A stretch of 64,000 bases of DNA, taken from contig OZ037770.1 in assembly GCA_964035545.1 (NCBI GenBank), forward strand, positions 4,620,662 through 4,684,661, given 5' to 3'. The position numbers and the translations under genes were made by a program. The stretch's first letter is position 1; each line of letters opens with the position of its first letter. This stretch comes from Bugula neritina (lineage: Eukaryota; Animalia; Bryozoa). Shown here piece by piece: positions 5,362 through 59,473 of this stretch. The notes below the pieces were generated by a model. It was not told the DNA's origin and did not search any database. It saw only the letters and a list, made by a program, of their open reading frames with translations.

Positions 5362-5545
5362 CACTAATATTCTACCTTACACTAATAGTCTACCTTACAC
5401 TAATATTCTACCTTACACTAACAATCTACCTTACACTAATATTCTACCTTACACTAATATTCTACCTTGCACTAATATTCTACCTTACACTAATAGTCTA
5501 GCTTACACTAATAGTCTAGCTTACACTAATAGTCTAGCTTACACT
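5362..5545. repeat. 18-bp minisatellite (CACTAATATTCTACCTTA), about 10 copies
   Basis: Direct tandem repeat; the same unit occurs at 61766-62020. Confidence 0.95.
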
Positions 5546-6928: not shown

Positions 6929-9900
6929 GTGAGTGAGTTTAAATACTCTTTTATTCACATATTTCTTGGAAAATAGAAATATATAAACTCTGAAGATATG
7001 TTGATGTTGTGCCACCAGAATTTAATATAAATCTATAAAACTATTTTATTATCATGCACTACTCTCTATAGTACTGTTTTATGTCACCAATTATCGTATT
7101 GCTTTGAGAATAGTAGAATAGATAAAACTATGCAAGCATTTGGGTTAGGGTTGTCTAATCTCAACACAATAAACACTGAACTATAAACTATACATAAAGT
7201 GATTATTTAGAAAGAATATAAAGCTATGCAATAAAATATATGTTACGTTAGTCATTGTCATAATTACTGAAATCCACCACAATATATGACAGGTGTCAGA
7301 ACGACATACATCACCTGCTAGCACTGTGTAATAATCACACTGCCACTGTATGATGTTACAGAGAAGATGAAAATTTGGTTCAGACATTCTGGACAGCCTC
7401 CTGTAGACTGGTCAGATGTACTGTGTGCTGATACCAAGTCATATACTACTGCTGAGGTGAAACGTGAAGTTGGGAGTTATCATATCACAGATCTGAAAGT
7501 GGAAGGGGAAATTCCAAGTAACATTGGAGAGATTGCTGGTAGAGCCCTGTGTCTATATGTTTTTAAACTGAGTGACGGAGCAAGTCTAGACAAGTGAGTG
7601 TCTATTAAAATAGCTGTGGAAATGATAAATGAATTCAGTTGTGTTATTTATTAAATGATAACGGATAATAGATGCTGAAGTTAAAGCATCTTTTTGCTCA
7701 TAATATATTCATACAATATAATATATATCAATATAGTAATATGTGCAACATTAAGCTTATAGTTGTAGAAACTAAGAAATGTAAAACTGCCTCTACTGCT
7801 ACTTCATAGTATTGATTAAATCATGTTTTATGTATATATAGCTAAAAGCTGGAGTAATGTACAGTTCATAATATATTATACAAAAGACTATGTTATGTCA
7901 TCAACTGCAAATTTACAATCTTAAACATTAGTTAATATATTAATTTACAGAGCATTGTAGAGTGAGGCCTCATGTACTATAAACTAACAGCTAACCTTCC
8001 TCTCCTCACCTACAACATAATATAACTGAAACTCTTTGGTGTTTTTTGCAACAATATATCTGTTTCCTGCATCTTTTATGTTGAATACACAAGTAGTCTG
8101 ATATAATGGTATATATTATTTTGATATATGACACACTTTATATCATGTTAAAAAACCTAAATATGCATATTTTTTGAAGTTATCTAATAGCTTGTCCTAA
8201 CGTGTAAATAATACAGTTTAATGGCATGCCATTGTATATCCTTATATCACAGAACTTTTCATAATCAATAATAAAACAGCCATCTGTAGTTTACTGGCAA
8301 TCATGGTAATAATTGAATCTTTCTTAGCTTCTTGCATCAATCACTTTGATTATCCATTACTCGAATGAATTTATTTTCTGCATTTTTTACCTGGTTGACT
8401 GTGCTTAGCAATATTATATGTACAGTGTCTATTTTTATGACACAGTAGACTACATATATCATACACTTTATATTACAGTCTGTGTCAGCTGACTCAGTTA
8501 GAGAAACTAGACATAGGAGAGAATCCTCTCAACACAGTACCTGAAGTTGTTTCATCACTCACATCACTTAAAAAGTTGAATATGAAGAGATGTAAATTAT
8601 CTACTTTACCTGAGAGGTTTGTGTGTTGCACTATTTCTTCTGTCTTAAACATTCAATATTTAACATATTTAATGCTTATTAAGTAGTGTTATGCAATGTC
8701 ATCATGTATTGCAAACATATGTTGAAAAACCTAAATATGCATTTCTGAAGTTATTTAATAGCTTGTCCTAACGTAGAAATAATACCGTTTAATGGTATGC
8801 CATTGTATATATCCTTGTATATCACAGAATTTTTTATAATTAATTAATAATTAATAATAAAACAGCCATCTGCAGTTTACTGGCAATCATAGCAATAATT
8901 GAATCTGTCTTAGCTTCTTGCATCAATCACTTCGACTATCCATTACTGCAATGAATTTGTTTTCTGCATTTTTCCCTGGTTGACAGCGCCTTAAGCAATA
9001 TAGTCTATACAGTGTATATCATTATCACACAGTAGACTACATATATCTTACCCTTTATGATTATTGCAGTCTATGTCAGCTGACTCAGTTAGAGAAACTA
9101 GACATAAGAGATAATCCTCTCAACACAGTACCTGAAGTTGTGTCATCACTCACATCACTTCAGGAGTTGGATTTGGAGAGCTGTGAATTATCTAATCTAC
9201 CTGAGAGGTTTGTGGAGTTTTTTAATATTTCAAACATTCAATAATTCACATTTTGATATAATGCTTACCAAGTATTGTTGGTTAGTATACCATTATGTAC
9301 CATTAAAAGGGTAAAGCTATAGATTGTAATTTGCTTGAGATTATATTGTATTATGGTTTCTCGTAACTTGCAAATGAACATGTTTTATTCATTTGGCATT
9401 ACATACTCTAATGGTATAAACCTTCGTTTACAAATAATATAGCATCCACTCGTAATTTACTAGTATCTATTTCCCATTAAATGCTTATTAGCTTTCTGTA
9501 TTTTACTTTGAATATACCTTGTCGGAATAAATTTGTATATAATATTATCCTGAACGAGTTGATTACATATATCATGTACTTTTTATTACAGTCTATGTCA
9601 GCTGACTCAGCTAGAGAAACTAAACATAGGATTGAATTCTCTCAACACAGTACCAGAAGTTGTGTCATCATTCACATCACTTAAAGAGTTGCATATGATG
9701 GGCTGTAAAATATCTAATCTACCTGAGAGGTTTGTTCGTCACAATACTCTTTCTGTTTCAAAAAGTCAATCACTCACATCTTTACATGCTTGTCAATTAT
9801 TGCTAGAGTATATAATCCTACATTGTTATATTCAACGGCCTTTCGATTTTTTTCTAGTAGTTTTTCACATCCTGTGAATAACCCAGTTTCATGGCATGAG

Positions 9901-12900
9901 ATTGTATGTTATTATGCCACAAGAACTTTTTGTAATTTATGACAAAACAGCCATCTATAGTTTACTGGCAATCATGTGTTGTGCGAAGCACAATATTTAT
10001 GTGGGCTTTCTAGTGAGCAATCAGCATTTAGTCACAAGCAATTCACTGGTCATCTCGTTTTATAAACTTTATTATAAACTATAAATATGGCGTAAAAATC
10101 TCTATAAGTATTATCACAATGCTACTTTACATCACGGCAAGTATACGCTAACTAACTAATAAATTGTTCTGCTTGGCTTCATCCAATAGTTGCCAATCAC
10201 TCTCTGAACCACGCCCTATTACACCGCCCCCCCCAACAGGAAGCATGCCTTCCTGATATGCACCCATAACAAAAAAAAATATAAAACAATTTATTACATA
10301 AAAAAAACCAAAAAAAAATATAAGATCTGAACATCACGTAAGGTGGACATCTCCAAAAGAGTTTACACACTATTGAGCAAATTTATGTATTGGCACAAGA
10401 AAAATATAATGATAAAAGAAAACAGAATAATACAATCACATATACGGAGATCGTGAAGCAAGGAGATTAGAGACGGCCAGAGGAGGGGAGAACGGAGAGA
10501 GAGAGATCGTCACCATCTGCAGGTGCGCATAGTCAGAGAAGTGAAGAGGGGGGATACTGCTATCATCAGTCTTGGTCGCCCCGTTTGAGGAGGGCCACCG
10601 AAGCTTTGAGAGTCTTCATCTCGGAGGCGGCTGCGGCAACTCTGGGGGTTAACCGTTGAATCTCAGCTTCTAAGTCATACATACGGAGCTCGACTTCTTT
10701 TATATTGCGAGCTGTGGGAGCCTGCCGTTTTGGGGAGGAGGGATGCCAGCAGCGTTTTTGAAGAGGGTTGTATAGAAGTGGGAGTGGGGGAACGTCATTT
10801 CCGAGGTATCTCGACTCTGTGGAGTAGGAGTCGAGGTAGGGTGGAGGGACGAGGTATAGTCTGTGCTGGAGGAGAGTGAGGTGACTTGGTAGGTTTCTTG
10901 TGTCTAGGGGGTCTTGGGCACGGTCCATGAGTGATGATGCGAGGGGAGGGGAATCCTTGTTTGAGTCGTTCAAAGCGGGGGAGATCCTTAATGAAAGGCT
11001 TGATCAGATTGAGAAAGGTGGGGAAGTTGTACTGGTCAACATCATACAGATGTCCCACATGGCAGTCCATAGTGCGCTGATGTTTGAGGATGTAGTCCCT
11101 GTGGTAACTACATTCACCACAGGGACAGAGAGTAGTTAGGAAGTGTTGCGGTACGTGGACGCGCAAACGGCGATGGGTGGAGAAGTGCTGCTGACACAGC
11201 CTGCAGGTGGTGCATTCGTCATGGCCGCGGTGTAGTTGAATCTGTTTTTCTGTGTCTGGTGCGACCCAGCTATGTTGTTGAAGTAGCACGTCTGGTAGGG
11301 ATGTAGGAGGTGTCTCACCGTTCCAGGCCAGTTCTAATGGTGGCATGTCTCCGTAGTTAGGAGAGCGAGTGGCGTCTAAAAGAGCAGAATTATTGTTAGA
11401 TCGAGTTTGATCTTTACAGCATAATTCTGATGACAATCGACTGTTAATAGTCTGAGAGTCATGCATCTTTTTATACGGCACTCGAGAGACTGTGTCAGAA
11501 CGTGTAAACTGACTGAGAGACATAGTATCAAGCTCCAGATCTAGTAGATCGTCCGCCATTACTATGTCCTCGTCGTCATTCACGTGTGACTCTGTCTCCA
11601 GTAACTGTGATTCAATCAGATCGATTAAATCAGAGTTGACTGAGGTGAGATCTATTTCCATTAGTGGAGTGTTAGATCTAAGCAAGCTTACCTGGGAACT
11701 CGGTATTTATACTCATACTCGACGTTCAAGATTGGATGTGGATGGATTAAAAAGCACGTCTACTCTTGACCGCGTCGGCGTAGGAAAAGGCTGGGCAGAG
11801 TGTTTGTTGTGCGAGACCGGAACTATGTGCCCGGAGAGTGGTAATTCCACTCGCTATTCCGTTTTCGCAAAACTTGGTTTTTCCGTTGTGTTCATAACTC
11901 CCACGCTTTGCTGCCAGTCTTTCCGTACGGCGCCCAGCTGGACTTTCATACCTGCCGCTTGTAATGCGGTCGCGTACAAAGTCTTGGAGATAAGCTGGGG
12001 GTCTTCTAGTACGTTGTCCCCTTTCAAGGAGGGGGGAGATGTACTAGTGGTAGACACCGGGGAAGGTGGTGTAGCTGGTGAGGGAGGTGGTGTAGCTGGT
12101 GAGGGAGGTGGTGTACTCACCAGTGGGTTGTTATTTTCCACTGGTGGTGTTTCCTGCCTCCCGTCAGCCGTTATTCTTTCTTCCCCTCTGTTTTCTCCGG
12201 ATGGAGCCCCTCCCGTGTGGAGTTTTGCACTTCCGGAAGTATACTCATTTCCGGAAGTGGTGGTGGTAGCCCTGGGGTCAGACGGCTTGGTTCTGGAGGC
12301 AGAGGGTGTGGCCCCGTTGGGGGAGGTGGCCTCTCTTGCCTTGCCAAGTCTTCCGTCCGTGGCATGACCCACTCATCATTGGGTTTATGCCGCCGCCGCC
12401 CGCGCATCGTTGTCTGCCTCCTGGGCTCTAACAATGGGGGGCACCCCCGGCCGCACCTGGGCTAGCCCAATAGGGTTTCAAGCGGGCTTCATTCTGGACA
12501 GATATTTGTCCAGACCGCTCCAACTTGTAAGTGTGATTGGGCATCACCTCAACTACCACGTAGAGCTCTACAAACTTAGGCTGTAGTTTAGCCGCCTGTC
12601 CTCGACGCCTACGGTAGTTGATCATCCAAACCCAGTCTCCGGTCTGGTAGAGGGGTGGCTCATCAGCGTCTTCCTGTCACACCTGCCACTGCTTATCCCG
12701 CAGTATTTCGTGTGCGACTTTCAGACGCTCTATCAATTCCCCAGCCTACTCGTGGACAGAGTATTCTGGCTCTGGAATATGATAGGCGAGGTGGTCGGGC
12801 ACTCGTGTCTCACGACCGAGTGTCAAGAGGTTGGGGGTCTCGCCGGTGCTGGTATGTGGCGTGCTGCGGTAGGCCCGCATGACCTGCGGCAACACGAGAT

Positions 12901-15900
12901 TCCACTCCTCCTGGCCTCGGCCGAGTAGTAGACTGCGGAGTGCATGCCCTGCATCCGGTTGTTGCGTTCGACCACTCCGTTACCCTGAGGGTGGTATGGA
13001 GTGGTCCTACTTTGGTTTACTCCCCAGAGGCGACAGAGGTCGCTCATCAGTTGAGACTGGAATTGCGACCCCTGGTCCGAGTGTAGTTGCTCGGGCAACC
13101 CAAAGTAGCAGAATACACGCTGATCTAGTGTGCTGGCCACTGTCGGGGCAGACGCGTCTGGAATAGCCAGTGCGTCTGCCCACCTAGTGAAGTGGCCGGT
13201 CAGCACTAGAATCCAGCTGTTTCCTCTGGGGGTGATGCGCATGGGTCCGACCAAGTCAACAGCTACCACCTGCCAGGGCCTGCCAGCATAGAGCCTTCGC
13301 CGTTCCGCTTCCCTGGGAAGACGGCCATGCTTGCTGGCCTGGCAGACTTCGCATTGCTTGATCCTTAGGCGGACGTCACGCTCCATGTTGGGCCAATACC
13401 ACTGGAGCCTTAGCTTTGTAAGCACCCTCCGAACTCCGGCGTGAGCCTGTCGGTGGGTGTCTCATACTAGCTCTCGGCGCATGGCGGCTGGGCAGATCAC
13501 CCTTTCTCGACCAGGGTGTCCCTGGTCGGCGGCCAAGGTGATGGTCAGCAGACCGTTTGGCCCGATCCGCAGAGAGTCCCAGTCTTGGCCGTACAGCCGT
13601 AATTCGGCGCACCCCTGCCGCAGCTGTTCTTCACTTGGTCGTCGCCCTTCCCGTTTAGCTCGATATATGTCAGCTACCACCCCAGGGAGGTCCTCCTGGA
13701 GTTTCTGCAGCTTTCTGACATTGCGAGCTAAGACAGGGTTGGCGCGGAGGTTGTTGACAGCCTTCGGTGGGTTAGGGCTCCTTGGTCGGAGTTGACCTTG
13801 GTCCCAGTCGTAGCTCACTTCAGGGTGGTCCAGTGTCGCCAACTCGGATCTTGGGGGACCCCCATTCCTTCTCTCGATATGGTGACACTGTTTACACCCC
13901 TCGTCCGACCGCCGACTCAGCCCGTCTGCATTGCCGTGTTTCCTACCGGGTCGATGTTCGATCCGGTATGAAAACTCGGCCAGGACTTCGAGCCATCCGG
14001 CGACTTGACTGGACGGTTCAGCTCTCTTACACAGCCAGATCAAGGAGGCGTGGTCCGTCCGCAAGCGGAACGGCCTACCGTAGAGATAAGGCCGGAAGTG
14101 TTTCACTGACTTGATTACTGCCAGCAACTCCTTGCGAGTGATGCAGTAATTGCGCTCTGGGGGTGAAAGTGATTTGCTGTAATAAGCTGCGACTACTTCA
14201 CGGCCCTCTTGTACTTGCGACAGCACAGCACCAACATTCTGGTCACTGGCGTCTGTGTCAAGGATATACTCCAGAGCGGGGTCTGGGTAGGCCAGAATTG
14301 GAGCCTCTAGCAAACGGCTCTTGAGACTGTCGAATGCCCTTTGTTCGACGGGTATCCACTGCCAGGCCAGCCCCTTTGCGATGAGCCGATTCAACGGCTG
14401 TGCAACTCCCGCAAAGTCTGGTATGTATTATCTGTAATACCCTACCAGCCCCAGGAAAGCCCGGAGTCCGGTCAAATCCTGGGGGTGACCCAGTCGGCCA
14501 CAGCCCGCACCTTATCGGGGTCCGTCGCCACGCCATTACGGCCGACTACGTGCCCCAGGTACTTCACCTCCGGCTGCAAGAGAGCGCATTTGGAAGGTTT
14601 GAGCTTGAGACCGGCACCTCGGAGACGCTCGAAGACCTCCCGCAAATGACTGACATGGGTCGGGAAGTCTGGGGAGATAACAATGACATCATCGAGGTAG
14701 ATCAGCAGTGTCTTCCAATGGAGCCCGCTGAGGACTTGCTCCATCAGCCTCTGGAAGGTAGCAGGAGCAGAAGTTAACCCGAAGGGCAGTACCTTCCACT
14801 TCCACAGCGCGTCTTGGGTGATGAACGCCGCTTTCTCCTGGGCGTCGGGACTGTGGGGAACTTGCCAGTAACCACTCAGCCAATTTAAAGTACTGAAGTA
14901 CTTGCTGCCGGCTAAGGCGTCCAGGGAGAGGTAGGGGAGGTAGAGGGTAGGCGTCCTGTATGGTTACGCTATTAGGTTTGCGGTAATTCACACAGAACCA
15001 CCAACTGCCGTCTTTTTTCCGGACCAGGACGACCGGCGAGCTCTACGCACTATGTGCAGGTTCTATGAGGCCGCGGTCCAGAAGATCCCGGACTTGTCGG
15101 CTGACCTCCCTTTCCTTCTCTGGCCCCAGTCTCCGGATGGGTTGGCGGATAGGCAAAGTCCCGGCAGCTAGCGGTATCTCGTGACGGACGGCTTTAGTTA
15201 AGCCCTCGTCCTGGTCTCCGCTGCTGAACACGTCCCCATACTGGCGCAGCAACTGGGCCATAGCCTGGCGCTCCCTGTTGCCCGCACAGCCTTCACAGGC
15301 TGACTTGTATAGTTCTTGGACGTGTTCCGGGACAGTCCCCCGCCGTGCAGACGGGCGCTCTTGGGGACCCTCCGTCGCTTCGCCCAGCGACGGTCCTATG
15401 TCTCCCTCTTGGACCGTGTGGAAACGGCCCAATAAGGATCCAGACGGTAGTGTCACTGACTCTGAAAAGGGGTTGACGCACTGAACCAAGATCTCCCCCC
15501 GGTCAGTCAGCCGATTCAAGCTGCTGGCGAGTTGGATTCTCTGGTGCGTTTCTTCGACAACCCCTAATCCATAGAGTTGGCGGTCATTCACTCTACAGTG
15601 AATGGTCGCCCGGGAGCGGCCGGGTACCGTACAGTTACGGACCACCTGCACGCCCCCGACCAGGGGGCGATCGAACTTGTCGACACAGGAAAGCTCCCGG
15701 CCTGCCATTAGTATGGCGGACTTATGGAAGTCGATGTGGCACTGGTGTCGCTTCAAGAACGGCGTCCCCAGGATAGCGTCCTCTTCCAGCTGGCTGAGGA
15801 TAATAGTTTCCTAGATGGCCTGGTTGCGGACGCGGCCAGGCAGCTCTACAACACCGTAGAAAGGGATACACGACCCGTCTGCGAGGGTGCCAGGTTCTCC

Positions 15901-18900
15901 GGTGTAGGGAGCTAACCCCTTCCTCACCTGGGCAGGGAGGGCATCGAAGACTCATCTGCTGAGGAGATTCGTGTTGCAACCGGAGTCCAGCAAGAACGTG
16001 ACGGTTTTGCCGGCTACCTTCCCGGGCAGGAAGTAGCTTTCTCCATGCGGCTGCAACCTTACTTCCCCAGCATGCGTAGCCTCGGTCAAACGGCATGGTG
16101 TCTGTTTGGTGGTATGCGGGCGCCGCTTCTTCGGCGGAGGGGTGTTTAATTCCCTTCCGATGTCCCGAGGCACCTCGCCGGCCAGCTCCGTCTCCGGTAG
16201 CTGGCTAAAGCGGTTGGTGAGTGGTAGCACGAACGGCTCCTGTCGCCCGATAGGGCGGGTGGTCCGTCGTGGTATCTGCCATCCCTGGGGTCGCTCTCTC
16301 TTCTGCTTGTGGGGCCTCTTTCTGGGTTGGGGTTCCTGGAGCGGGGAGGTCCTGGCTTGTTGTTGCTCCTATTCCGGGTAGTCTTTCCCGAGGTCTCTCC
16401 CTTTTGTCCTCGGTTAAGGGGGCCGGCATCGGTAAGAGTCTTGGCCATCTGTTTCAGCCTGGCGCTCAGCTGGCCCATCTTCTCTCCGAGTGGTTGGGCT
16501 ATCTCCGCGGTGACCTGCATGCCTTCTGGTTTCCTTGTATGTAACTGCTCGGCCCGGAGATAGTCTTCTCCGATTTGTAGGGCGCTTTCTAGAGTGGTCA
16601 CTCCTTTTGCATGTAGTTGATGGCAAAAACCCACATCTTTTAGGGATTGCATGAAGTCAATGAGAGTAAAGTTTCGTCGGTGTGCTTCTGGCAGGTCACT
16701 GTATGCGCTCGGCGCCAGTCTCTTCACCAAGGCGACGTGGTCGCGGAGCGGAGTATTTTTCGCCTGGCGTAGCACTTGTAGACGAGCTCTGGCTTCCAGA
16801 GCGGGGGTGCCAAAACGGCTCCGTAATGTAGTGAATATTTCCGCCACGCTCCGTCCCTGTCCGAACGGTCTAGCGCGCTCCGTCAATACTTCCCGCAGCT
16901 TGACGAGGGCTATTTGCGGCGGCCATTGAGCGACATTTGCTACTTCGTGGAATTCTTCAATGAATTGCTCTACATCTTCTACACCCGTGAAGTTGGGAGC
17001 GGTCAGTTAATCTCTATACACCTCCTCCATATGTAAGAAATTGGCTGGCTTACCTCCCGGGTGCTTCGTTGTGTGCTCTGTCATATTCTCCGTCTCTTCA
17101 TTGTCTCAGCTAGAATAATCCCACCGCTGCCACCACTGTTGTGCGAAGCACAATATTTATGTGGGCTTTCTAGTGAGCAATCAGCATCTAGTCACAAGCA
17201 ATTCACTGGTAATCTCGTTTATCGTAATCAAACTTTATTATAAACTATAAAATATGGCGTAAAAATCTCTATAAGTATTATCACAATGCTACTTTACATC
17301 ACGGCAAGTATACGCTAACTAACTAATAAATTGTTCTGCTTGGCTTCATCCAATAGTTGCCAATCACTCTCTGATTGGCAGGGGGATACGCGTGAGGCGT
17401 AAACCACGCCCCATTACGCATGTCAATTATTGAAACTTTCTTAGCTTCTTGCCCTAATCACTTTGACCTTTTTTGTTGGGCTCTTTTTTAAGAGCAAACT
17501 ACTTCACATTTCATGAAGCAAATAATTTTCATTAAGCAAACAATTTTGTCCTTTGCTAGTTGTTCTTGCCCCTGCATTTCTCTTCTTTTTTTCTGGGCTT
17601 TTTTTCCTTTGTTTTCTTCTCGGAGCAGGCAGTTTTGTTGCTTCGCTCTGAAATTCTTTCCCTCTTCTAGGGGTACCTGATCTGACACCTATTCTTGGTC
17701 TGTAAACACCTGCAATGGCTGGTAAGGAGTCTGGTGGTCAGAGTTCTCGTACTAGTTCAACCTCGGGGGGGGGGGGGCTCTAATGCATGCACATTATGCA
17801 CAATGTCAACATATAATAAACCCAGTCTTGAGTGCTGTCTCTGTTCGAGATCGACACATACCAACTGTCTACCAGACTGGAAGGACCTAAATCGATCTAT
17901 AGATATCATCAGACTGTTTTCTACATCGGGCTTGAAATGGTATTGCCAGACATGTGAGCCCACGCTCAGTGATTACATCAGCGGTGATGAAATTAAAAAA
18001 TCTCTTGCTCAAAAAGAAACTAAAATGGATTCTGTCCAAAACCTTGTCTGTGAGAATATCAAACTGACCAAATCTGAGACAATCAAGCCCGATAACACAG
18101 AACCCTGGTTTACTGAAATCAAACAAACTGTCGAAAGATTGGAAACCAATGTCTAATCCCAACTGAAAAGAAAAGAGAAGGAAGAGCGTGTTATCATACA
18201 TGGCTTAAAAGAGAATAACAATACCATGGAAGAGATTATAGAAATATGTGATATTCTAAGTTTCAATCATGAGTCTCTGCTAAAATTCTCTAGACTAGGT
18301 AGACGTAACATGAACTTCCCCAACTCTGACAAAATAAGACCAGTTAAAGCTACCTTTAATTCTGAGATGAATAAAAATGATTTTATGTATAGATACAACA
18401 CCTGGGAAAATAAAACATCTACATGTTGTACACCAGACCTATCTCCTGAAGAGCGTGACCGTGACTATAAACTTAGAAAACTGAGGGACGAATTAAAAGC
18501 AACTCACTCAGACAAAATGTTTCAAGTAAGAAATGGCTCTATTTACTCCAAGTCTAAAACATCCGGGTCAGACCGCTGGTCCAAGTTTGCCCATGACTCT
18601 GATACTATTGCTTCAGAATCTCTCCGGGACCCCAGCGAGACTAACACCACAACTGATAAAAACACAGCTGGACATTAGATATATACAAGTCATACTTACC
18701 ACTCTACTGCTAACTAACCTGTCCAACTCAACTATCATGGCAGAACAAAAAGAGTTTAAAGTAATATCTTGGATTTGTAATGGTATCAGGAGTAAAATAC
18801 ATGAACTTTCCATGCCATTATATCAGCAATCGCCAGATATCTTTTGCTAATGTGAAACAAAACTAGATTCATCAGTTTCCGATAATGAGTTAACCAGAGG

Positions 18901-21900
18901 CTACACCCTTTACCGGCGTGATGGAACTGACGGACTAGGACGTGGAGGTGGAGTCCTTATAGGCCTATCCAATAAATGTCCCTTTGTTGTTAGTAGAATC
19001 AATGTCTCACACCCTGGGGAAATCATTGCCCTTGATTTATCAATCTGTGGATACTCTTTCACTATTGCATGCTATTACCGTAGGCCCTGTATAAAACAAG
19101 TAGAAGATATAGTAAATTGGTATTATGATCAAACCAATCCGAACATTGTTATGGTTGGGGATTTTAACCTACCTGACATTGGCTGGAATGATAGTTACAG
19201 GCCTGTACTTAAAACAACAAGAGAAACTAACTTGCATCAATTGTTCGTAGATTTTATAATTTCGAATAATCTTTCTCAGGCTATCAATAAACCTACTCAC
19301 GACAAAGGTAATACGCTTGATCTAGTTGTTACAGATGTAACTACCACTAACCCCCGAGTTGAGTCATTCTGCTCTGACCATTTTATTATCAATTTCAATG
19401 TGTTGGCGGATAATGTTTTAAAAGGACAGCATCTTTAACCAAACCAAAACCATATTGGCAGTTTGAAAAGGCAGACATAACGAACATCACCGTGGACTGT
19501 TACTCCCTACATTGTAAAATCACCTAAGAAATGTAGCGCTGAACAATTATGGCATAATCTCAAATCTGGAATACTTCAGGTAGCACATTCTAATATCCCA
19601 TACAAATTTAGAAAGAAAAAAAATCAGAACTCTAGATATCCCAAGAAACTGAAAGTGAGATCAGAAAAAGAAAACCCCTCCACCTAGCTTGCCTTAACGA
19701 TCGCACCCCGCACAACATTTTAAAACATGCTACCCAGTCCCGGTACTGCAAGAAATTGTGTAACAAGGACTATAATAATTATATAAACAAACACATATGC
19801 AATACATTAGAGCAGGGTGATTCAAAACCTCTTTATCGGTTAATAGCAAGTGAAAAGGGCAGCTCAAATACTGTACGCCAACTAGACAACATCCCCCTAA
19901 CAACAATACTGCTATAGCTGAATCTTTTGCGGACTCCTTTGCTTCTGTGTTTTCTATTGATGATGGTAATATCCCTCCCTGCATTCCACCTCAAACTATA
20001 TCATCTCCTATACAATTTGATCCTCGGGGAGTCCTAACACAGCTCACCAAACTCGATCCACGAAAAGGTGCTGGCCCAGATGAGCTTTCTCCTGCACTTC
20101 TAAAATATCTTGCACATTATATATATGAGCCCCTGACAAAGGTTTTTCAGTACTTTTACGATACATCTCAGACACCACAAGACTGGAAAACAGCAAACAT
20201 TGTACCGATCTTCAAGAAATGAAGTCGTACAGACCCGCTGAATTATAGGCCAATATCACTCACTTCTATCATATCCAAAATCTTCGAGCATATCGTATCA
20301 CATAATAGCAACTGTTTCCTCGAATCAAATGACCTGTTTTACCCACACCAACATGTTTTCAGGACAAATCATGGCTGCGATACTCAGTTGTTGAATACCG
20401 TGAGTGAATTTATAGATTTTTCGACGAAATGATACCGGTTGACCTCGCTGTCTTGGATTTTTCAAAGGCCTTTGACGCTGTGTCGCACCAAAAACTACAG
20501 GTTAAACTGCTAAATATCGGAATAGCTGATAAAACTGTTAAATGGATTTTTTCATGGCTTCAGAGCCGTCTTCTTTCAGTCTGTGTCAACAACGTCAAAT
20601 CGGCCACTAGACATGTGACCTCAGGAGTGCGCCAAGGCAGTGTATTAGGACCATTGTTATCTAGTGTGTACATAAATGACATGCACTCTGCGGTAGCCAA
20701 CAGCAAGCTTAAACTATATGCGGATGATTCCTTGTTGTACAAACCAATCACAACACATGCTGATTCTAGTTTGTTTCAGAATGACTTAGACCATCTTATA
20801 ACTTGGGCAGACAGTTCTCAGATGAAGTTCAATATAAATAAATGTGAGCATATGACAATTCAACGCTCCACTGTAAATCCTCTAGTGTCTCAATACAGCA
20901 TGAATAATGACCTCTTACAATGTGTTGACAAAGTATTATACCTTGGTGTCACGATTGATAATGAACTGTCATTTGATCAACATATAATAAACATTTGCTC
21001 AAAAGCTAATAAATTATTACACATGCTGATGCGCTGTCTAAAAAAGGCTAAAAGTAAAACCAGAGCCATAGCTTATAAAAAAGTCTGTTGCCCTATACTA
21101 GAATTTGTGACTCACACCTGGTCTCCATTTAAATTGAAAAACATCAACATCATAGAAGGTATAAATAGAAAAGCTTTCAGGTGGACATTCTGTAGGAGAA
21201 AACGAGATCATATAACTGAGCTCATGACAAACTCTAATTGGGATAGCCTTGCACAAAGACATGACAATGCAGACCAAAAAATGTACCTTCGTATGCTTTC
21301 TGGTAGTGCTGCTATAGACCAGGACCGGTTCTCCCTTCATCTTGCAGAGTCTCACAATACCAGACATGGTGCTATTAAGGGCAATATCCTTACCAAAACT
21401 CCAAACATTCATATAAACATCGCATCCATAAACTTTTTTAATGATTCTATAGCTGCTTTGCTTAACTGATTATAAGCACTTAACACCGACTCTGCTTTAT
21501 ATCATCTGAAGCTGTGCGGTGTATATTTATTTATTTATTTACTTTTTTTTCTCTCCTGGCAGTAGCTAGCTATTGAGCTTTGAATCAAAGCATAATTAAC
21601 TATATTCTTATCTCGTAGACAAAACGGTTTTCTTCCTTGCTACTGATAATCTAAACAATTGTTCATACACCACTGCATCTCGATAAAAGAGCCCAAGCGC
21701 TCCGAGTGAGATTAATTAGATGAGATGATGAGATGAGATGACCTTCCATTGCTGGAATTATTTTGTTTTCTGCATTTTTTCCTGGCTGATTACGCTTGAG
21801 CAATAGAGTCCATACAGTGTATGTTATTATCACGCAGTAGACTGCACAAATCTTACCCTTTATGATTATTACAGTTTATGTCAGCTGACTCAGTTAGAGA

Positions 21901-24900
21901 AACTAGACATAGGATGGAATCCTCTCAACGCAGTACCAGAAGTTGTGTCATCACTCACATCACTTAAAGAGTTGGATATGTGGAGCTGTAAAATATCTAA
22001 TCTACCTGAGAGGTCTGCTAGTCACAATACTCTTTCTGTTTCAGAAAGTCAATTACTCACATCTTTACATGCTTGTCAATTATTGGTAGAGTATATAATG
22101 TTATGTTTAAATGCCTTACAATATTTTTTAAGTTATCTAGTAGTTTGTCATATCCTGTGAATAACCCAGTTTCATGGTATGCGATTTTATGTTATTATGC
22201 CACAAGACCTTTTTGTAATTTATAACAAACAGCCATCTATAGTTTACTGGCAATCATGTCAATTATTGAATCTTTCTTAGCTTCTTGCCTTAACCACTTT
22301 ACCAGTCCATTGCTGGAATGATTGTGTTTTCTGCACCTTTTACCTGGCTGACTACGCTTAAGAAATATAGTCTATACAGTGTATATTATTATCACGCAGT
22401 ATAGACTACATATATCTCACCCTTTATATTACAGTCTATGTCAGCTGACTCAGTTAGAGAAGCTATGGATAGGATGGAATCCTCTCAACACAGTACCTGA
22501 AGTTGTGTCATCATTCACATCACTTAAAGAGTTGCATATGATGGGCTGTAAAATATCTAATCTACCTGAGAGGTCTGTTAGTCACAATACTCTTTCTGTT
22601 TCAGAAAGTGAACCACTCACATCTTTACATGCAGTGTATATTATTATCACACAGTAGGCTACATATATTATACATTTTTGATTATTTCAGTCTATGTCAG
22701 CTGACTCAGTTAGAGAAACTGTACATAGGATTGAGTCCTCTCAACACAGTACCAAAAGTTGTGTCATCACTCACATCACTTAAGGAGTTGGATCTGAGAA
22801 GGTGTAAATTATCTACTCTACCTGAGAGGTTTGTGGAGTCTTTTATTGTTTCAATCATTCAATATTTCACATTTTGATATAATGCTTACCAAGTATTGCT
22901 AATTAGTATACCATTATGTATCGTTAAAAAGCATAAAGCTATAGATTGTGATTTGCTTGAGATCATATTTTATTAGAGTTTCTTGACACTGGAAAATAAA
23001 CCTGTTATAATCATACGGCATTACATACTCTGATGATATGAACTCTCGTTAACAAAAAATATAGCATCCACTTGTAGTTTACTATTATCCATTTTCCATT
23101 AAATGCTTATTAGCTTTCGGTATTTTACTTTGAATATGCCTTGTCGGAATAAATTTGTTTCTTGGATATTTTACCTGATTGGATATACAAGTAGTATATA
23201 TACAGTATACAATATCATCCTGATAGAGTGGATTACATATATTATGCACTTTATATTACAGTCTATGTCAGCTGACTCAGTTAGAGAAGCTGAACATAGC
23301 AAAGAATCCTCTCAACACAGTACCTGAAGTTGTGTCATCACTCACATTACTTGAAGAGTTGGATATGTCGAGCTGTAAAATATCTACTCTACCTGAGAGG
23401 TTTGTGAGTCACAATACTCTTTCTGTTTCAGAAAGTCACGCACTTACATCTTTATATGCTTGCCAATTATTGCTAGAGTATATAATCCTACATTGTTATG
23501 TTAAAAGGCCTTACGATATTTTTTTAAGTTATCTCGTAGTTTGTCTTAACCTGTGAATAACTCAGTTTCATGGCATGACATTGTGTGTTATTATGCCTCG
23601 GGAACCTTTTGTAATTATTAAACAGCCATCTATAGTTTACTGGCAATCATGTCAATTATTGAATCTTTCTTAGCTTCTTGCCTTAACCACTTTACCAGTC
23701 CATTGCTGGAATGATTGTGTTTTCTGCACCTTTTACCTGGCTGACTACGCTTAAGAAATATAGTCTATACAGTGTATATTATTATCACGCAGTATAGACT
23801 ACATATATCTCACCCTTTATATTACAGTCTATGTCAGCTGACTCAGTTAGAGAAGCTATGGATAGGATGGAATCCTCTCAACACAGTACCTGAAGTTGTG
23901 TCATCATTCACATCACTTAAAGAGTTGCATATGATGGGCTGTAAAATATCTAATCTACCTGAGAGGTCTGTTAGTCACAATACTCTTTCTGTTTCAGAAA
24001 GTGAACCACTCACATCTTTACATGCAGTGTATATTATTATCACACAGTAGGCTACATATATTATACATTTTTGATTATTTCAGTCTATGTCAGCTGACTC
24101 AGTTAGAGAAACTGTACATAGGATTGAGTCCTCTCAACACAGTACCAAAAGTTGTGTCATCACTCACATCACTTAAGGAGTTGGATCTGAGAAGGTGTAA
24201 ATTATCTACTCTACCTGAGAGGTTTGTGGAGTCTTTTATTGTTTCAATCATTCAATATTTCACATTTTGATATAATGCTTACCAAGTATTGCTAATTAGT
24301 ATACCATTATGTATCGTTAAAAAGCATAAAGCTATAGATTGTGATTTGCTTGAGATCATATTTTATTAGAGTTTCTTGACACTGGAAAATAAACCTGTTA
24401 TAATCATACGGCATTACATACTCTGATGATATGAACTCTCGTTAACAAAAAATATAGCATCCACTTGTAGTTTACTATTATCCATTTTCCATTAAATGCT
24501 TATTAGCTTTCGGTATTTTACTTTGAATATGCCTTGTCGGAATAAATTTGTTTCTTGGATATTTTACCTGATTGGATATACAAGTAGTATATATACAGTA
24601 TACAATATCATCCTGATAGAGTGGATTACATATATTATGCACTTTATATTACAGTCTATGTCAGCTGACTCAGTTAGAGAAGCTGAACATAGCAAAGAAT
24701 CCTCTCAACACAGTACCTGAAGTTGTGTCATCACTCACATTACTTGAAGAGTTGGATATGTCGAGCTGTGAAATATCTACTCTACCTGAGAGGTTTGTGA
24801 GTCACAATACTCTTTCTGTTTCAGAAAGTCACGCACTTACATCTTTATATGCTTGCCAATTATTGCTAGAGTATATAATCCTACATTGTTATGTTAAAAG

Positions 24901-27900
24901 GCCTTACGATATTTTTTTAAGTTATCTCGTAGTTTGTCTTAACCTGTGAATAACTCAGTTTCATGGCATGACATTGTGTGTTATTATGCCTCGGGAACCT
25001 TTTGTAATTATTAAACAGCCATCTATAGTTTACTGGCAATCATGTCAATTATCAAATCTTCCTTAGCTTTTTGCCCTAATCGCTTTGACTATCCATTGCT
25101 GGAATTATTGTGTTTTCTGCATTTTTACCTGGCTGACTAAGCTTAAGCAAAATAGTCTATACAGTGTATATTATTATCACACAGTAGACTACATATATCT
25201 TACCCTTTATGATTATACAGTCTATGTCAGCTGACTCAGTTAGAGAAGCTATGCATAGGAAAGACTCCTCTCAACACAGTACCAGAAGTTGTGTCATCAC
25301 TCACATCACTTAAAGAGTTGGATATGGAGAGCTGTAAATTATCTGCTCTACCTGAGAGGTTTGTGGAGTCTTTTATTATTTCAATCATTCAATAATTCAC
25401 ATTTTGATATAATGCTTACCAAGTATTGCTAAATAGTATACCATTATGTACCGTTAAAAAGCATAAAGCTATAAATTGTAATTTGTTTGAGATTATATTG
25501 TATTAGAGTTTCTCAAAAGTTGAAAATAAACATGTATTAATCATTTGGCATTACAGACCCTAATGGTATAAACTTTCTTTACCAAATAAAGTAACACCCA
25601 CTTGTACTTTACTAGTATCTATTTCCTATTAAATGCCTATTAGCTTTCTGTATTTTACCCTGAATACGCCTTGTCGGAATAAATTTGTTTCTTGGAAATT
25701 TTACCTATTGGATATACAAGTAGTATATATACAGTATATAATATTCTCCTGATAAAGTGAATTACATATATTATGTACCTTTTATCACAGTCTATGTCAG
25801 CTGAATCAGTTAGAGAAACTAGAGTTAGGACACAATCCTCTCAACACAGTACCAGAAGTTGTGTCATCACTCACATCACTTAAGGAGTTGGATCTGAGAA
25901 GGTGTAAATTATCTACTCTACCTGAGAGGTTTGTGGAGTCTTTTATTGTTTCAATCATTCAATATTTCACATTTTGATATAATGCTTACCAAGTAGCTAT
26001 TGCTAATTAGTATACCATTATGTATCGTTAAAAAGCATAAAGCTATAGATTGTGATTTGCTTGAGATCATATTTTATTAGAGTTTCTTGACACTGGAAAA
26101 TAAACCTGTTATAATCATACGGCATTACATACTCTGATGATATGAACTCTCGTTAACAAAAAATATAGCATCCACTTGTAGTTTACTATTATCCATTTTC
26201 CATTAAATGCTTATTAGCTTTCGGTATTTTACTTTGAATATGCCTTGTCGGAATAAATTTGTTTCTTGGATATTTTACCTGATTGGATATACAAGTAGTA
26301 TATATACAGTATACAATATCATCCTGATAGAGTGGATTACATATATTATGCACTTTATATTACAGTCTATGTCAGCTGACTCAGTTAGAGAAGCTGAACA
26401 TAGCAAAGAATCCTCTCAACACAGTACCTGAAGTTGTGTCATCACTCACATTACTTGAAGAGTTGGATATGTCGAGCTGTAAAATATCTACTCTACCTGA
26501 GAGGTTTGTGAGTCACAATACTCTTTCTGTTTCAGAAAGTCACGCACTTACATCTTTATATGCTTGCCAATTATTGCTAGAGTATATAATCCTACATTGT
26601 TATGTTAAAAGGCCTTACGATATTTTTTTAAGTTATCTCGTAGTTTGTCTTAACCTGTGAATAACTTAGTTTCATGGCATGACATTGTGTGTTATTATGC
26701 CTCGGGAACCTTTTGTAATTATTAAACAGCCATCTACAGTTTACTGGCAATCATGTCAATTATCAAATCTTCCTTAGCTTCTTGCCCTAATCGCTTTGAC
26801 TATCCATTGCTGGAATTATTGTGTTTTCTGCATTTTTACCTGGCTGACTAAGCTTAAGCAAAATAGTCTATACAGTGTATATTATTATCACACAGTAGAC
26901 TACATATATCTTACCCTTTATGATTATACAGTCTATGTCAGCTGACTCAGTTAGAGAAGCTATGCATAGGAAAGACTCCTCTCAACACAGTACCAGAAGT
27001 TGTGTCATCACTCACATCACTTAAAGAGTTGAATATGGAGAGCTGTAAATTATCTGCTCTACCTGAGAGGTTTGTGGAACACAGTCCTAAGTTATTCAAT
27101 AATTCAACATTTCACATAAATTTATATGCCTACCATTTCTTTCTAAAGTGTATATAACCCATTTCTGCTATGTTGAAAAACTCTAAAATGTTTCTTTTTT
27201 AAATTATCTCGTAGTTTGCCATAACCTTGAAATATCATCAGTAATTTATGGTTGTATAACATTGAATATTATTATGCAGTAAGACCTTTTTGCAATTACA
27301 TGTAATTAACAAACAGCCATCTACAGTTTACTGGCAATCATGTCAATTATCAAATCTTCCTTAGCTTCCTGCCTTAATCACTTTGACTATCCATTGCTGG
27401 AATTATTGTGTTTTCTGCACTTTTTACCTGGCTGACTATGCTTAAGCAATATAGTCTATACAGTGTTCATTATTATCACACAGTAGACTACATATATCTT
27501 ACCCTTTATGATTATACAGTCTATGTCAGCTGACTCAGTTAGAGAAGCTATGCATAGGAAAGACTCCTCTCAACACAGTACCAGAAGTTGTGTCATCACT
27601 CACATCACTTAAAGAGTTGAATATGGAGAGCTGTAAATTATCTGCTCTACCTGAGAGGTTTGTGGAACACAGTCCTAAGTTATTCAATAATTCAACATTT
27701 CACATAAATTTATATGCCTACCATTTCTTTCTAAAGTGTATATAACCCATTTCTGCTATGTTGAAAAACTCTAAAATGTTTCTTTTTTAAATTATCTCGT
27801 AGTTTGCCATAACCTTGAAATATCATCAGTAATTTATGGTTGTATAACATTGAATATTATTATGCAGTAAGACCTTTTTGCAATTACATGTAATTAACAA

Positions 27901-30900
27901 ACAGCCATCTACAGTTTACTGGCAATCATGTCAATTATCAAATCTTCCTTAGCTTCCTGCCTTAATCACTTTGACTATCCATTGCTGGAATTATTGTGTT
28001 TTCTGCACTTTTTACCTGGCTGACTATGCTTAAGCAATATAGTCTATACAGTGTTCATTATTATCACACAGTAGACTACATATATCTTACCCTTTATGAT
28101 TATACAGTCTATGTCAGCTGACTCAGTTAGAGAAACTACACATAAGATTTAATACTCTCAACACAGTACCAGAAGTTGTGTCATCACTCACATCACTTAA
28201 AGAGTTGGATATGTGGAGCTGTAAAATATCTAATCTACCTGAGAGGTCTGCTAGTCACAATACTCTTTCTGTTTCAGAAAGTCAATTACTCACATCTTTA
28301 CATGCTTGTCAATTATTGGTAGAGTATATAATGTTATGTTTAAATGCCTTACAATATTTTTTAAGTTATCTAGTAGTTTGTCATATCCTGTGAATAACCC
28401 AGTTTCATGGTATGCCATTAGTATACCATTATGTATTGTTAAAAAGCATAAAGCTATAGATTGTGATTTGCTTGAGATCATATTTTATTAGAGTTTCTTG
28501 ACACTGGAAAATAACCATGTTTTAATCATTTGGCATTACATACTCTAATGGTATAAACCTTCATTAACAAATAATATAGCACCCACTTGTACTTTACTAG
28601 TATCTATTTCCCATTAAATGCTTATTAGCTTTCTGTATTTTACCCTGAATACGCCTTGTCGGAATAAATTTGTTTCTTGGATATTTTACCTGATTGGATA
28701 TACAAGTAGTATATATATACAGTATATAATATTCTCCTGATAAAGTTTATTACATATATTATGTACCTTTTATTACAGTCTATGTAAGCTGACTCAGTTA
28801 GAGAAACTAGACATAGGATGTAATTCTCTCAACACAGTACCAGAAGTTGTGTCATCACTCATATCACTTAAAGAGTTGAATATGATGAGCTGTGAATTAT
28901 CTACTCTACCTGAGAGGTTTGTGTCATCTTAATGTTTGAAACATTCAATAATTCACATGTTGATATAATGCTTATACCAAGTATTGCTAATTAGTATGTC
29001 ACTATGTATTGTTGAAAAGCATAAAGCTATAAATTAGAATTTCTTTGAGGCTATATTGTATTGGAGTTTCTCAAAACTTGAAAATAAATATGTTTCAGTT
29101 ATCTGGCATTACATTTCCTATTGCTATAAAACCTTCTTCAATAAATACTAAAGCACCCACTTGTAGTTCACTAGAATTTTTTTCACATTAAATGTCTTTT
29201 ACTTTGAATATGCCTTGTCATACTAAATTTGTGTTTTTTTTTGCATGTTATACCTGATTGAAGACACCAGTATAGTATACAGAGTACATACTATTATCCT
29301 GATACAGTAGACTACATATATTACACACTTTATATTACAGTCTGTGCCAGCTGACTCAGTTAGAGAAACTACACATAAGAGACAATCCTCTCAACACAGT
29401 ACCAGAAGTTGTGTCATCACTCGCATCACTTGAAGAGTTGAATATGGGGAGCTGTAGATTATCTACTCTACCTAAGAGGTTTGTGTGCCACAACAAGTTT
29501 TATATATCACTTTTAACATTCAATAACTATTATTTTAAAGCCATATTTCAACACAGTAAATACTGCGTTAGGATGCAAACCTGCAAACCTACATATGAAT
29601 CTCACCGTTTCTGGGGATATTGTCAATTAGCACACTATCTATAGAAGTTTCCTTGACTTCACAAATTATTTTATAGTATTTCAATATCTTTTTTGAAATG
29701 CTCACCATGATAGGTTGACTAGGCTTTTCTTCAGAAATTGTTTTAATAACTCTTTTCATCATATTCCAACTATAGCTACTTCTGTACACAAAATTAGTTT
29801 TTATTATATCATTATAATAACATATTATCTCATTATTTTCAAGTTAGTCAGAAAACCACTTCCTTATATTTTTAATGACATCATGTATGACATACTTGAC
29901 TCAATCAACTGTATTGTGTAAGGCTCATTAGTAACAATGCATGGTGGATTATATGGTATGTTTTACTTAAATAATTCAAGTTTGAGGTACAATTATTTCG
30001 ACATGAAAGATCTGACATTATATTGTAATCCTAAGAGGACAAAACAAATTATTCAATATTGCCACTTCGTTTTTCTTCAGGCTCTGCTTTAGTTGTCTCT
30101 CTCAACTCTTGGTGTAGTAGAAGCCAATTTTTATTCTATTCCTGTTCTCAAATAACTTATGAATATATTTCCTTATATTTAATTTACATTTATTAATTAC
30201 AAATTAACGGGCCTTTAAAAGTGCAACATGTTCCTGCAAGCCGATGACTTTCCAGAGTTGTATTCTCTCATAGTAAAATAATTCACAACTTCTACTTCCT
30301 GTCTAAAGCTATAATACATTTATTAGAATAATTAGTGAGAGGTTGTGGCAGAAGTATTTTATTTTACTTGACATTACTTTAATGCCTTTACGTGGATGTT
30401 TCAGAGCTGTACTGGTGTTCCTATTTGGTGATAAATTGCATGTATTTTGGCATATAAAACAATATTCCTTATAATGAAAACATCCATATAATAGAATACC
30501 AGTGTGAGCAGTTACTCAGTGATCTGAAAAATAGAAAAATATCGCTGTAAGACAGTGTTACATGCATGTAAGTTTTGTTTTGGTGACACTAATTAGTACA
30601 AATGTAACACTCCTTTTACCAAATATACTTATAGCTGTATTTGGCAAATTCTTATAAAAAGTGCCTAAAATTTTGCTTATAGCATTTAATATAATACATA
30701 ATTGTAACCTAGACCTACTTTTTTGTATTATAAAGATAATTCCTAGAATAAAAGTTATTCACTGTATTATTTCAAGGCATTGCATGGAGATAAACTTGTT
30801 ATAGTCACTGCCACTTAGTACTACATTATGTGTAACTATTGTTATGCTATTATTGGATATACAATTTGTCATTATTGTCTCATAAATCAGGAAACTGTTT

Positions 30901-58359: not shown

Positions 58360-58443
58360 TTATATATATATATATATATATATATGATATATATATATAA
58401 TATTATTATATATCTATATATATATATATGATATATAATATTA

Positions 58444-58489
<46 letters not shown>

Positions 58490-58540
58490 ATATCATTATA
58501 TATATAATGTATATAATTTAATATATAATATAATAATATA

Positions 58541-58586
<46 letters not shown>

Positions 58587-59259: not shown

Positions 59260-59324
<65 letters not shown>

Positions 59325-59441: not shown

Positions 59442-59473
<32 letters not shown>

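Follow-up and report, generated by a model that had tools for sequence, protein, structure and literature searches.

Chimeric exons in the LRR cassette array of a predicted LRR-Roc-COR-caspase gene of the bryozoan Bugula neritina

Reassortment of LRRs in described systems

LRR regions of plant resistance genes (Cf-9/Hcr9, RPP5 and the flax L locus) undergo intragenic unequal crossover and gene conversion, and their LRRs usually lie within one large exon. The VLR genes of lampreys and hagfish are assembled somatically, from an incomplete germline gene and non-coding flanking donor cassettes. Brown-alga LRR-ROCO genes carry their LRRs on a tandem series of symmetric phase-2 exons of equal size, with one LRR (72 bp) per exon; this family is clustered, rapidly rearranging and exon-shuffled, shows diversifying selection on the x positions of LxxLxLxxN, and has been proposed to encode immune receptors (Zambounis et al., 2012, PMC3341825; Teng et al., 2024, PMC11378527). 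The terms "gene conversion" and "breakpoint" are absent from the main text of the 2012 paper (PMC3341825), and "gene conversion" and "unequal" are absent from the 2024 paper (PMC11378527).

The locus described here lies in a window of 64,000 nucleotides (the whole stretch of B. neritina DNA that was analysed) and contains an array of LRR cassette exons. Exon shuffling in the LRR-ROCO genes of brown algae is its closest published parallel: LRR-Roc-COR architecture (here a predicted one), phase-2 equal-sized LRR exons, a clustered, rearranging family, selection on x positions and a proposed role in immune reception are common to both. The array differs in its animal host, in having two LRRs per 138-bp exon and a predicted caspase domain after COR, and in joins that fall inside exons, so that single LRRs are reassorted instead of whole exons; unlike the brown-alga genes, it has no cassettes on the non-coding strand of the window. 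With plant resistance genes it shares mosaic LRR repeats, variation in repeat number, paralog exchange within a cluster and hypervariable solvent-exposed beta-strand residues, whereas here an exon holds a single pair of LRRs and the introns are involved in the exchanges, which they mark. As in VLR assembly, LRR cassettes are joined in conserved stretches, with junctions inside LRR modules and new combinations as the product; in contrast to VLR assembly, the gene itself is complete, the events appear to have taken place in the germline, and nothing points to a dedicated mechanism.

The cassette array and its host gene

A core motif at the centre of the exon defines the array (Table 1). With at most one mismatch allowed, it occurs 18 times in the window on the + strand (chance expectation 0), in every case within a regular AG/GT exon with an open frame, and is not found on the − strand; inactivated or intact LRR exons on the non-coding strand or within introns, the criterion taken from brown algae, were not found in the window. 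Each of the near-identical exons E1–E18 is exactly 138 bp long, encodes two 23-residue LRRs (LRR_4 on E1, 28.4 bits; cutoff 27) and is flanked on both sides by phase-2 introns, which split an AGT codon after its second base. The exons designated 3–16 in the original prediction are E3 (9592-9729) to E16 (28108-28245); positions are given below as E4:57 (position 57 of exon E4) or I4:170 (position 170 of intron 4). Two exon tracts are conserved between cassettes (positions 1–27 and about 46–100), and variation is concentrated in a 5′ cluster (positions 28–47) and a 3′ cluster (positions 80–134). Introns of the array are 118–533 bp long, with the exception of intron 3 (12,145 bp), and belong to several poorly alignable types (X, Y, and Z); cassettes occur with every one of the four possible pairings of upstream and downstream intron type. 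Intron 3 contains a GC-rich LTR retrotransposon, whose LTRs have diverged by roughly 1.5–2%, and a second insertion that is common to intron 1 of a paralog.

The array is the LRR arm of a predicted LRR-Roc-COR-caspase gene, with putative Roc-COR and caspase exons downstream on the same strand. The exon with the Roc match (PF08477; 30.4 bits, cutoff 27, E=5e-7) starts with additional LRRs, and the candidate COR-A match (PF16095; residues 328–394) scores 20.1 bits, under its cutoff of 35.3, at the expected place directly after Roc. Peptidase_C14 was matched at 34999-35220 (38.2 bits) and 35961-36188 (36.1 bits; cutoff 21.4). In RNA-like contigs, exon bins are covered and intron bins are not, and GT..AG joints fall at the predicted borders; the sides of these joints (20–29 bases) fit many cassettes, so splice-site use is shown and exon partners are ambiguous. 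Among joints with sides of this length there is no sign of exon skipping. Logan contigs on the array (70–280 bases) break at the conserved core and do not reach across the exon centre because of their short length, and hence are neutral on the chimeras described below.

Table 1. Features of the array and of the predicted host gene (window coordinates)
Feature	Position	Strand	Basis or detail
Cassette array, 18 exons (E1–E18)	8479..29478	+	Core-motif scan; Pfam LRR_4/LRR_8 match on E1
E3, NIGLNS first half and 19-residue second half	9592..9729	+	Translation
GC-rich LTR retrotransposon, intron 3	9977..17420	−	RT_RNaseH ORF; LTR alignment; intron resumes at 17421
Second transposable-element insertion, intron 3	17466..21744	+	RVT_1 ORF at 20429-21469
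E4, DIGWNP first half and 12-residue second half also found in E16	21875..22012	+	Translation
252-bp block E4:57-I4:170 = E16:57-I16:170 (28164-28415)	21931..22182	+	0 mismatches
Tandem duplication, period 1393 bp: I4:215-I7:260 = I7:221-I10:260	22227..25052	+	1 mismatch in 1433 bp
Duplicated segment E9:46-I11:9 = E12:46-I14:9	24129..27078	+	6 mismatches and one 4-bp indel in about 1241 bp
E12, chimera	25791..25928	+	Upstream intron and positions 1–45 (ELGHNP) E17/E7-like; 46 onward and downstream intron E9-like
Tandem duplication, period 588 bp: I13:330-E15:27 = I14:352-E16:27	26833..28134	+	0 mismatches over 666 bp; 4 in 714
E16, three-part mosaic	28108..28245	+	Positions 1–27 and upstream intron = E15; 28–56 (HIRFNT) unique; 57 onward = E4
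Intron 16, chimera: Y-type (positions 1–170) and X-type (from about position 73)	28246..28778	+	Block comparison
527-bp patch E17:118 - intron 17 - E18:82	28896..29422	+	About 99% identity to paralog C6:4,984,270-4,984,796
Large open stretch with terminal-LRR exon, Roc GTPase and candidate COR-A	32040..34088	+	Pfam
Caspase (Peptidase_C14) exons	34999-35220, 35961-36188, 36814-36951	+	Pfam

Joins inside and outside the cassette exons

The original prediction held that the first and second LRRs of a cassette are reassorted by crossover or gene conversion in the conserved exon centre, also between non-adjacent cassettes and across the 12-kb intron. The pairings on which it was built are borne out by translation: one 12-residue second half follows DIGWNP in E4 and HIRFNT in E16, another follows YIGLSP in E6 and E9 and ELGHNP in E12, and a 19-residue second half follows NIGLNS in E3 and WIGWNP in E5 and E8. 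The start of the downstream intron indeed moves with the second half, gtctgctagtca continuing both E4 and E16 and gtttgtggagtc continuing E6, E9, and E12, and partners need not be neighbors, as E4 and E16 are separated by 6.2 kb and 11 cassettes. The downstream intron of E11 likewise starts with gtttgtggagtc.

Half-exon chimerism is clear for two exons, E12 and E16. E18 provides a third case, with a boundary that it has in common with a paralog, and E3 versus E5/E8 is a fourth, less certain one. Blocks were delimited by seed-and-extend comparison (default BLAST fused blocks, masking joins). For E12, the left join of the duplication of E9:46-I11:9 falls within the exon, which makes E12 chimeric; MaxChi places the break between E6 and E12 after exon position 45 (permutation p<0.0002), and the join with E9 is bracketed from position 45 to 65 or 94. 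The closest upstream relative of E12 is E17 (3/97 and 7/100 differences in the upstream 200 bp), whereas at exon positions 80–138 E12 has 0/59 differences from E9 and 8/59 from E17. E16 equals E15 upstream and E4 downstream in a three-way comparison: E4 and E16 differ at 22 of 167 positions left of exon position 57 and at 0 of 252 to the right (MaxChi, permutation p<0.0002; Fisher 7e-10), 170 bp of the shared sequence is intron, and the join is bracketed between exon position 56 and about 107. A clade of E4 and E16 is not rejected by the 5′ data (AU p=0.47), so this case rests on the pairwise profile. The right end of the E16 patch is a junction without extended homology (Y/X junction of intron 16, 28415/28416), and the patch is only partly accounted for by a simple conversion tract.

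The sharing between E3 and E5/E8 is real, yet the block is older (the most diverged, at 2.5%) and less certain than those of E12 and E16. Block E3:48-I3:31 has 3 mismatches in 122 bp (97.5% identity) and E3 does not differ from E5 at exon positions 80–138; the mid-exon break alone is non-significant (permutation p=0.12), and the strongest break precedes the exon by 13 bp, at the edge of the upstream intron. Exchange across the 12-kb intron was not confirmed: the E3/E5 block is more diverged than the LTR pair within the intron, and the block comparison of the array found no block of at least 99% identity linking E1–E3 to E4–E18.

Other joins of the array fall in introns or at exon edges (I4:215, I7:260, I13:330, I16:170, I11:9, and E16:27). 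The 1393-bp-period duplication is recent, makes E5-E6-E7 equal to E8-E9-E10 and has both joins in introns; that of 588-bp period makes E14 equal to E15 and ends at position 27 of E16. Sequence is also shared with a paralog 350 kb away (5 differences in the 527-bp patch), with which E18 has its HIRDNP first half and upstream intron, though not its second half, in common. No donor for the HIRFNT, ELGHNP or NIGLNS first halves was found among 102 cassettes of 12 other loci.

Tests on the exons agree with these profiles. PHI on exons only gives p<=0.002, and site incompatibility is 0.61 between the two variable clusters and 0.40 and 0.25 within them. Separate trees of the two halves, the check proposed with the original prediction, are incongruent, the 5′ data rejecting the groupings E6+E9+E12 (AU p=0.0096) and E3+E5+E8 (AU p=0.0055). 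Convergence of the second halves was rejected as unlikely, since the sharing extends to synonymous sites and to 170 to >1000 bp of intron. The family comprises at least 334 such cassettes, and mosaics of a similar kind occur in many arrays of the contig-level 16-Mb sequence; in a sample of 120 cassettes, the distances of the two halves are nearly uncorrelated (r=0.16), and the adjacent intron is also shared in 15 of 18 pairs with one half exactly shared. Hypervariable codons are the x positions of LxxLxLxxN/C, on the concave face; by uncorrected Nei-Gojobori proportions, a rough measure, pN/pS is 2.96 in these 7 codons and 0.60 in 38 framework codons.

The proposed role of the exon centre thus stands in part: joins fall within the exon between the variable clusters (after position 56 in E4/E16 and after 45 in E6/E9 versus E12), but the centre is not the sole site of exchange, and 38 of 52 clear switches in the 12-locus family sample are intronic. 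A hotspot at the exon centre was considered as a firm claim and dropped, since the outcome hinges on the criterion. Central ends number 19/160 in a looser family census (9.6% expected; p=0.19) and are enriched, at 12/52, under a stricter, partly uneven one (p=0.003); the figure for the window alone (5/15, p=0.01) is post hoc. The exon centre is almost without informative sites, so any join between the variable clusters maps there by construction and is only bracketed.

Origin and meaning of the mosaic exons

Non-allelic homologous recombination in the germline probably shaped the array: misaligned cassettes would have undergone unequal crossover and gene conversion, with half-exon swaps as one product. 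Between cassettes whose introns differ in type, long tracts of perfect identity are confined to the exon (positions 1–27 and about 46–100), for which reason joins between such cassettes would tend to fall there; the exon would be favored owing to these identity tracts. A join between the 5′ and 3′ clusters would combine the first LRR and upstream intron of one cassette with the second LRR and downstream intron of another, and the same process also produces intronic joins and plain duplications such as E5-7 = E8-10 and E14 = E15. New LRR pairs could then alter the ligand-binding face and be sorted by diversifying selection on concave-face codons.

An unlikely account dispenses with the central join: cassettes would share ancestry from the 5′ edge of the exon, and divergence, through strong positive selection or conversion of very short patches, would be limited to the hypervariable cluster (20 bp) of the first LRR. 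Some paralog pairs fit it, having an identical 3′ half, near-identical introns on both sides and 5–6 differences confined to the 5′ cluster (e.g., the cassettes at 7503 and 8641 of C6:4540001+), as do the pN/pS of about 3 in hypervariable codons and, for E3/E5, a best break upstream of the exon with a non-significant exon-only break. The two clear chimeras argue against it, as differences between E4 and E16 extend to two exon positions (2 and 56) that lie beyond the hypervariable codons and to 14/100 upstream intron positions, and E12 and E9 have different bases at position 15 and upstream introns of different types; these differences beyond the hypervariable codons mean that the entire 5′ side is of different origin in both pairs. 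Chimeric or falsely duplicated cassettes might instead have been created by the assembly of near-identical tandem repeats, given that the array contains repeats of 0.6–1.4 kb at 99.9–100% identity and that contigs on it reach no more than a few hundred bases and break at the conserved core. Such an artefact is improbable: a short-read contig (28386-28514, run X1, possibly the assembly's own sample) crosses the Y/X junction of intron 16 with 0 mismatches, similar mosaics recur across the 16-Mb sequence, and the chimeras retain splice sites and reading frame.

Of comparably low probability is a stronger form of exchange, in which the conserved core would be a favored, perhaps selected, recombination site where single LRRs are reassorted at a high rate between the family's cassettes and paralogs, as a germline or even somatic generator of diversity for LRR-GTPase-caspase receptors in immunity or colony allorecognition. 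Programmed somatic diversification of the lamprey VLR kind, with cassettes copied into each other within the life of the animal, is the most improbable reading of all. The cassette-like layout and the hypervariable binding-face codons would suit it, and alternative joints occur in contigs of other samples, for which paralogs or alleles account equally well; against it, the array is complete and spliceable in the germline as it stands, and its blocks span whole introns at divergences of 0 to 2.5%, as for events spread over evolutionary time.

Germline recombination between misaligned cassettes, the preferred explanation, is an ordinary mechanism and a known evolutionary route of receptor-like repeat genes; the value of the locus is therefore descriptive and comparative, not conceptual. 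The array is a clean animal example of a receptor-like LRR domain acquiring new repeat combinations. With every LRR pair on an exon of its own, the origin of the pieces is recorded by the introns and single recombination events can be read to the base, something seldom achieved in plant resistance genes. The products of this LRR-Roc-COR-caspase family are plausible immune or allorecognition receptors in a little-studied phylum.

Cassette array and its gene

A search of the window for the core motif gave 18 matches with at most one mismatch, all on the + strand (0 expected by chance), and each match sits in a 138-bp exon that has an open frame and is bordered by AG (acceptor) and GT (donor) (18/18). 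These LRR cassette exons (E1-E18; E3-E16 are exons 3-16 of the original prediction) each encode two 23-residue LRRs (Pfam LRR_4, LRR_8); introns I1-I17 carry the number of the preceding exon, and E4:57 or I4:170 denotes position 57 of exon E4 or position 170 of intron I4. The first base of every cassette exon is the third base of a split AG/T codon; the introns on both sides are therefore in phase 2 and the frame is kept with any number of cassettes. In an RNA-like public run, exon bins are at high depth, intron bins are hardly covered, and GT..AG joints fall at the predicted exon borders; the public contigs are too short for joint partners to be assigned or chimeras checked. 'Symbiont metagenome' runs (2016) contain the host gene family, including exon-confined RNA-like contigs (23401-29400), and another sample of the same organism has fixed differences, e.g., at 24603 and 24609.

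The caspase exons (34999-36951; active-site region EACSGG) follow the Roc-COR exon, pointing to an LRR-Roc-COR-caspase architecture. Further downstream (38241-40362) are two long + strand ORFs of 265 and 422 aa, the latter with a weak DUF6589 match and possibly a transposase-derived element. With at least 334 copies of the core motif in the 216-Mb genome, the array gene belongs to a large, clustered family. An 18-bp minisatellite, CACTAATATTCTACCTTA, lies a few kb upstream of both the window array (5362-5545, 10 copies) and the array of the next gene (61766-62007, 13 copies) and may mark a ~60-kb gene-duplication unit. An impure (TA)n tract of 1.5 kb (10% GC) spans 58361-59879.

Features of the array and its gene, and near-identical blocks within the array
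Feature	Position	Strand	Details
E1	8479-8616	+	first cassette exon
E3	9592-9729	+	cassette exon
LTR retrotransposon, GC-rich	9977 to ~17420		in intron 3; LTRs differ by few substitutions and indels
RT-bearing 4.3-kb element	17466 to ~21744		in intron 3; ~97.5% identity to copy in paralog intron 1
E16	28108-28245	+	cassette exon
E18	29341-29478	+	last cassette exon
Open stretch	32040-34088	+	terminal LRRs; Roc, 30.4 bits (cutoff 27); weak COR-A match
Caspase exon (Peptidase_C14)	34999-35220	+	38 bits (cutoff 21.4)
Caspase exon (Peptidase_C14)	35961-36188	+	36 bits (cutoff 21.4)
Third caspase piece	36814-36951	+	weaker match
Block	I4:215-I7:260 = I7:221-I10:260		1433 bp, 1 mismatch; E5-E6-E7 = E8-E9-E10; both joins intronic
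Block	E9:46-I11:9 = E12:46-I14:9		~1241 bp, 6 mismatches, one 4-bp indel; makes E12 a chimera
Block	E4:57-I4:170 = E16:57-I16:170		252 bp, 0 mismatches; makes E16 a chimera
Block	I13:330-E15:27 = I14:352-E16:27		714 bp, 4 mismatches (inner 666: 0); E14 = E15
Block	E3:48-I3:31 = E5/E8:48-I5:31		122 bp, 3 mismatches; shared second half of E3

Reassorted exon halves

The pairings from which half-exon swapping had been proposed were all confirmed in the window exons: one second half is common to E3 (NIGLNS; six-letter labels are first-half peptides) and E5 and E8 (WIGWNP), another to E4 (DIGWNP) and E16 (HIRFNT), and a third to E6 and E9 (YIGLSP) and E12 (ELGHNP); the downstream intron starts agree as originally described. 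Sites that vary are grouped at exon positions 28-47 and 80-134; between these two clusters, only positions 56, 64, 65 and 73 vary. Among the 14 distinct exon sequences, PHI was significant (p≤0.002), and site incompatibility was 0.61 between clusters versus 0.40 and 0.25 within them. Trees from 'upstream intron + exon 1-56' and 'exon 57-138 + downstream intron' are incongruent: the 5' data reject E6+E9+E12 (AU p=0.0096) and E3+E5+E8 (p=0.0055) and do not reject E4+E16 (p=0.47), and the 3' data marginally reject E12+E17 (p=0.044). With half trees incongruent and central breakpoints significant in two pairs, the swap idea survives.

It holds in substance for two of the pairs. E4 and E16 differ at 22 of the 167 columns ahead of exon position 57, then at none of the 252 that follow (MaxChi split after position 56, permutation p<0.0002; Fisher 7e-10); by three-way comparison E16 is a mosaic, in which the upstream intron and positions 1-27 match E15 (0 differences, 227 bp), positions 28-56 are unique, and position 57 to I16:170 matches E4. 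E6/E9 and E12 split after position 45 (9/45 vs. 9/517 differences, p<0.0002). Over the 200 bp upstream of E12 the nearest sequence is that of E17 (10 differences in 197); in the second half and the downstream intron, E12 matches E9. Because position 65 is A in E6 and E9 but G in the other exons, the join is bracketed between 45 and 65 or 94. The reading is uncertain for E3 and E5/E8: their second halves are identical (0/59 differences), splitting after position 47 falls short of significance across the exon and 55 bp of intron (p=0.12), and with the upstream intron included the best split lies 13 bp ahead of the exon. Past ~60 bp the downstream intron of E3 is nearest to E7, not E5, so the E3/E5 piece is a short, older patch. 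E18, absent from the original prediction, is in substance a further half-exon case: a 527-bp patch (28896-29422; E17:118 through intron 17 to E18:82) has ~99% identity to a paralog 350 kb away, with ~88% background identity on its left and unrelated sequence on its right, so E18 and the paralog have the HIRDNP first half and the intron upstream of it in common but not the second half.

The main rival reading is divergence, or a short patch, within a hypervariable cluster. A family sample drawn from 12 further loci comprises 120 intact cassettes. Across it, first-half and second-half distances show almost no correlation (r=0.16), and of 18 pairs with one half exactly shared and at least four differing sites in the other, 15 have the adjacent intron in common as well. 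The rival has its basis in islands within these paralog arrays: in some pairs the introns on either side are near-identical and one half is identical, and all 5-6 differences sit in the hypervariable cluster of the other half, an indication of conversion over very short patches or of strong selection. Examples are the cassettes at positions 7503 and 8641 of sampled loci L031/L032 (C6:4540001+) and the cassette at 9220 of L039 (C6:4850001+), where second halves are identical and the 5-6 differing sites all lie in the 20-bp first hypervariable cluster.

Positions of the joins

Seed-and-extend self-comparison of the array yielded the five near-identical blocks tabulated. The array introns comprise several poorly alignable types, X (starting gtttgtggagtc), Y (starting gtctgytagtcacaatac) and Z (I14 and I15), and each of the four upstream/downstream type combinations is represented among the exons. 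Intron 16 is itself chimeric, with Y-type sequence (1-170) joined to X-type sequence (from ~73) at a junction lacking extended homology. Introns 5 (22573-22690) and 8 (23966-24083), only 118 bp long, are Y-type with a ~310-bp internal deletion, the first ~60 bp being joined to the last ~58 bp.

Of 160 clusters of near-identical block ends counted across the family, 55 fall in exons (24% expected from length, p=0.002) and 19 are compatible with a central join, not significantly more than the 9.6% expected (p=0.19). When only ends beyond which the sequences are unrelated are counted, 12 of 52 are central (p=0.003) and 38 intronic, a count uneven between classes because conserved exon parts mask switches elsewhere in the exon. 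In the window alone, 5 of ~15 ends are central (p=0.01, a post hoc figure). The exclusive role originally given to the exon centre was therefore overstated, with most clear switches intronic; in our reading, joins fall in many places, the exon being somewhat favoured where intron types differ, and the counts do not establish a true hotspot at the core.

Exchange across the 12-kb intron 3 was likewise claimed too strongly. The intron is of Y type and carries two separate insertions. At 2.5% divergence, the E3/E5 block is the oldest in the array, and no block of ≥99% identity in the self-comparison links E1-E3 with E4-E18; nothing thus shows exchange across the expanded intron, and the E3/E5 exchange may predate the LTR insertion. 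The LTR retrotransposon has ~58% GC (genome ~31%), and the paralog copy of the RT-bearing element (C6:4725001+, intron 1) lies equally far from the next exon.

Variable residues and known parallels

The hypervariable codons (11, 13 and 14 in the first LRR; 34, 36, 37 and 39 in the second) are x positions of LxxLxLxxN/C, which face the concave side of the LRR; rough pN/pS is 3.0 in these codons versus 0.6 in the framework. Among published systems the nearest is that of the brown-alga LRR-ROCO genes, which undergo exon shuffling and in which each 72-bp phase-2 exon carries one LRR (PMC3341825, PMC11378527), whereas the cassette exon here carries two in 138 bp. Roc-COR proteins of bacteria and animals whose N-terminal LRRs evolve fast and whose C-terminal effectors vary have been described as conflict systems (PMC8195603). 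Mechanistically, the tandem exon array of Bugula neritina is a case of ordinary non-allelic homologous recombination.
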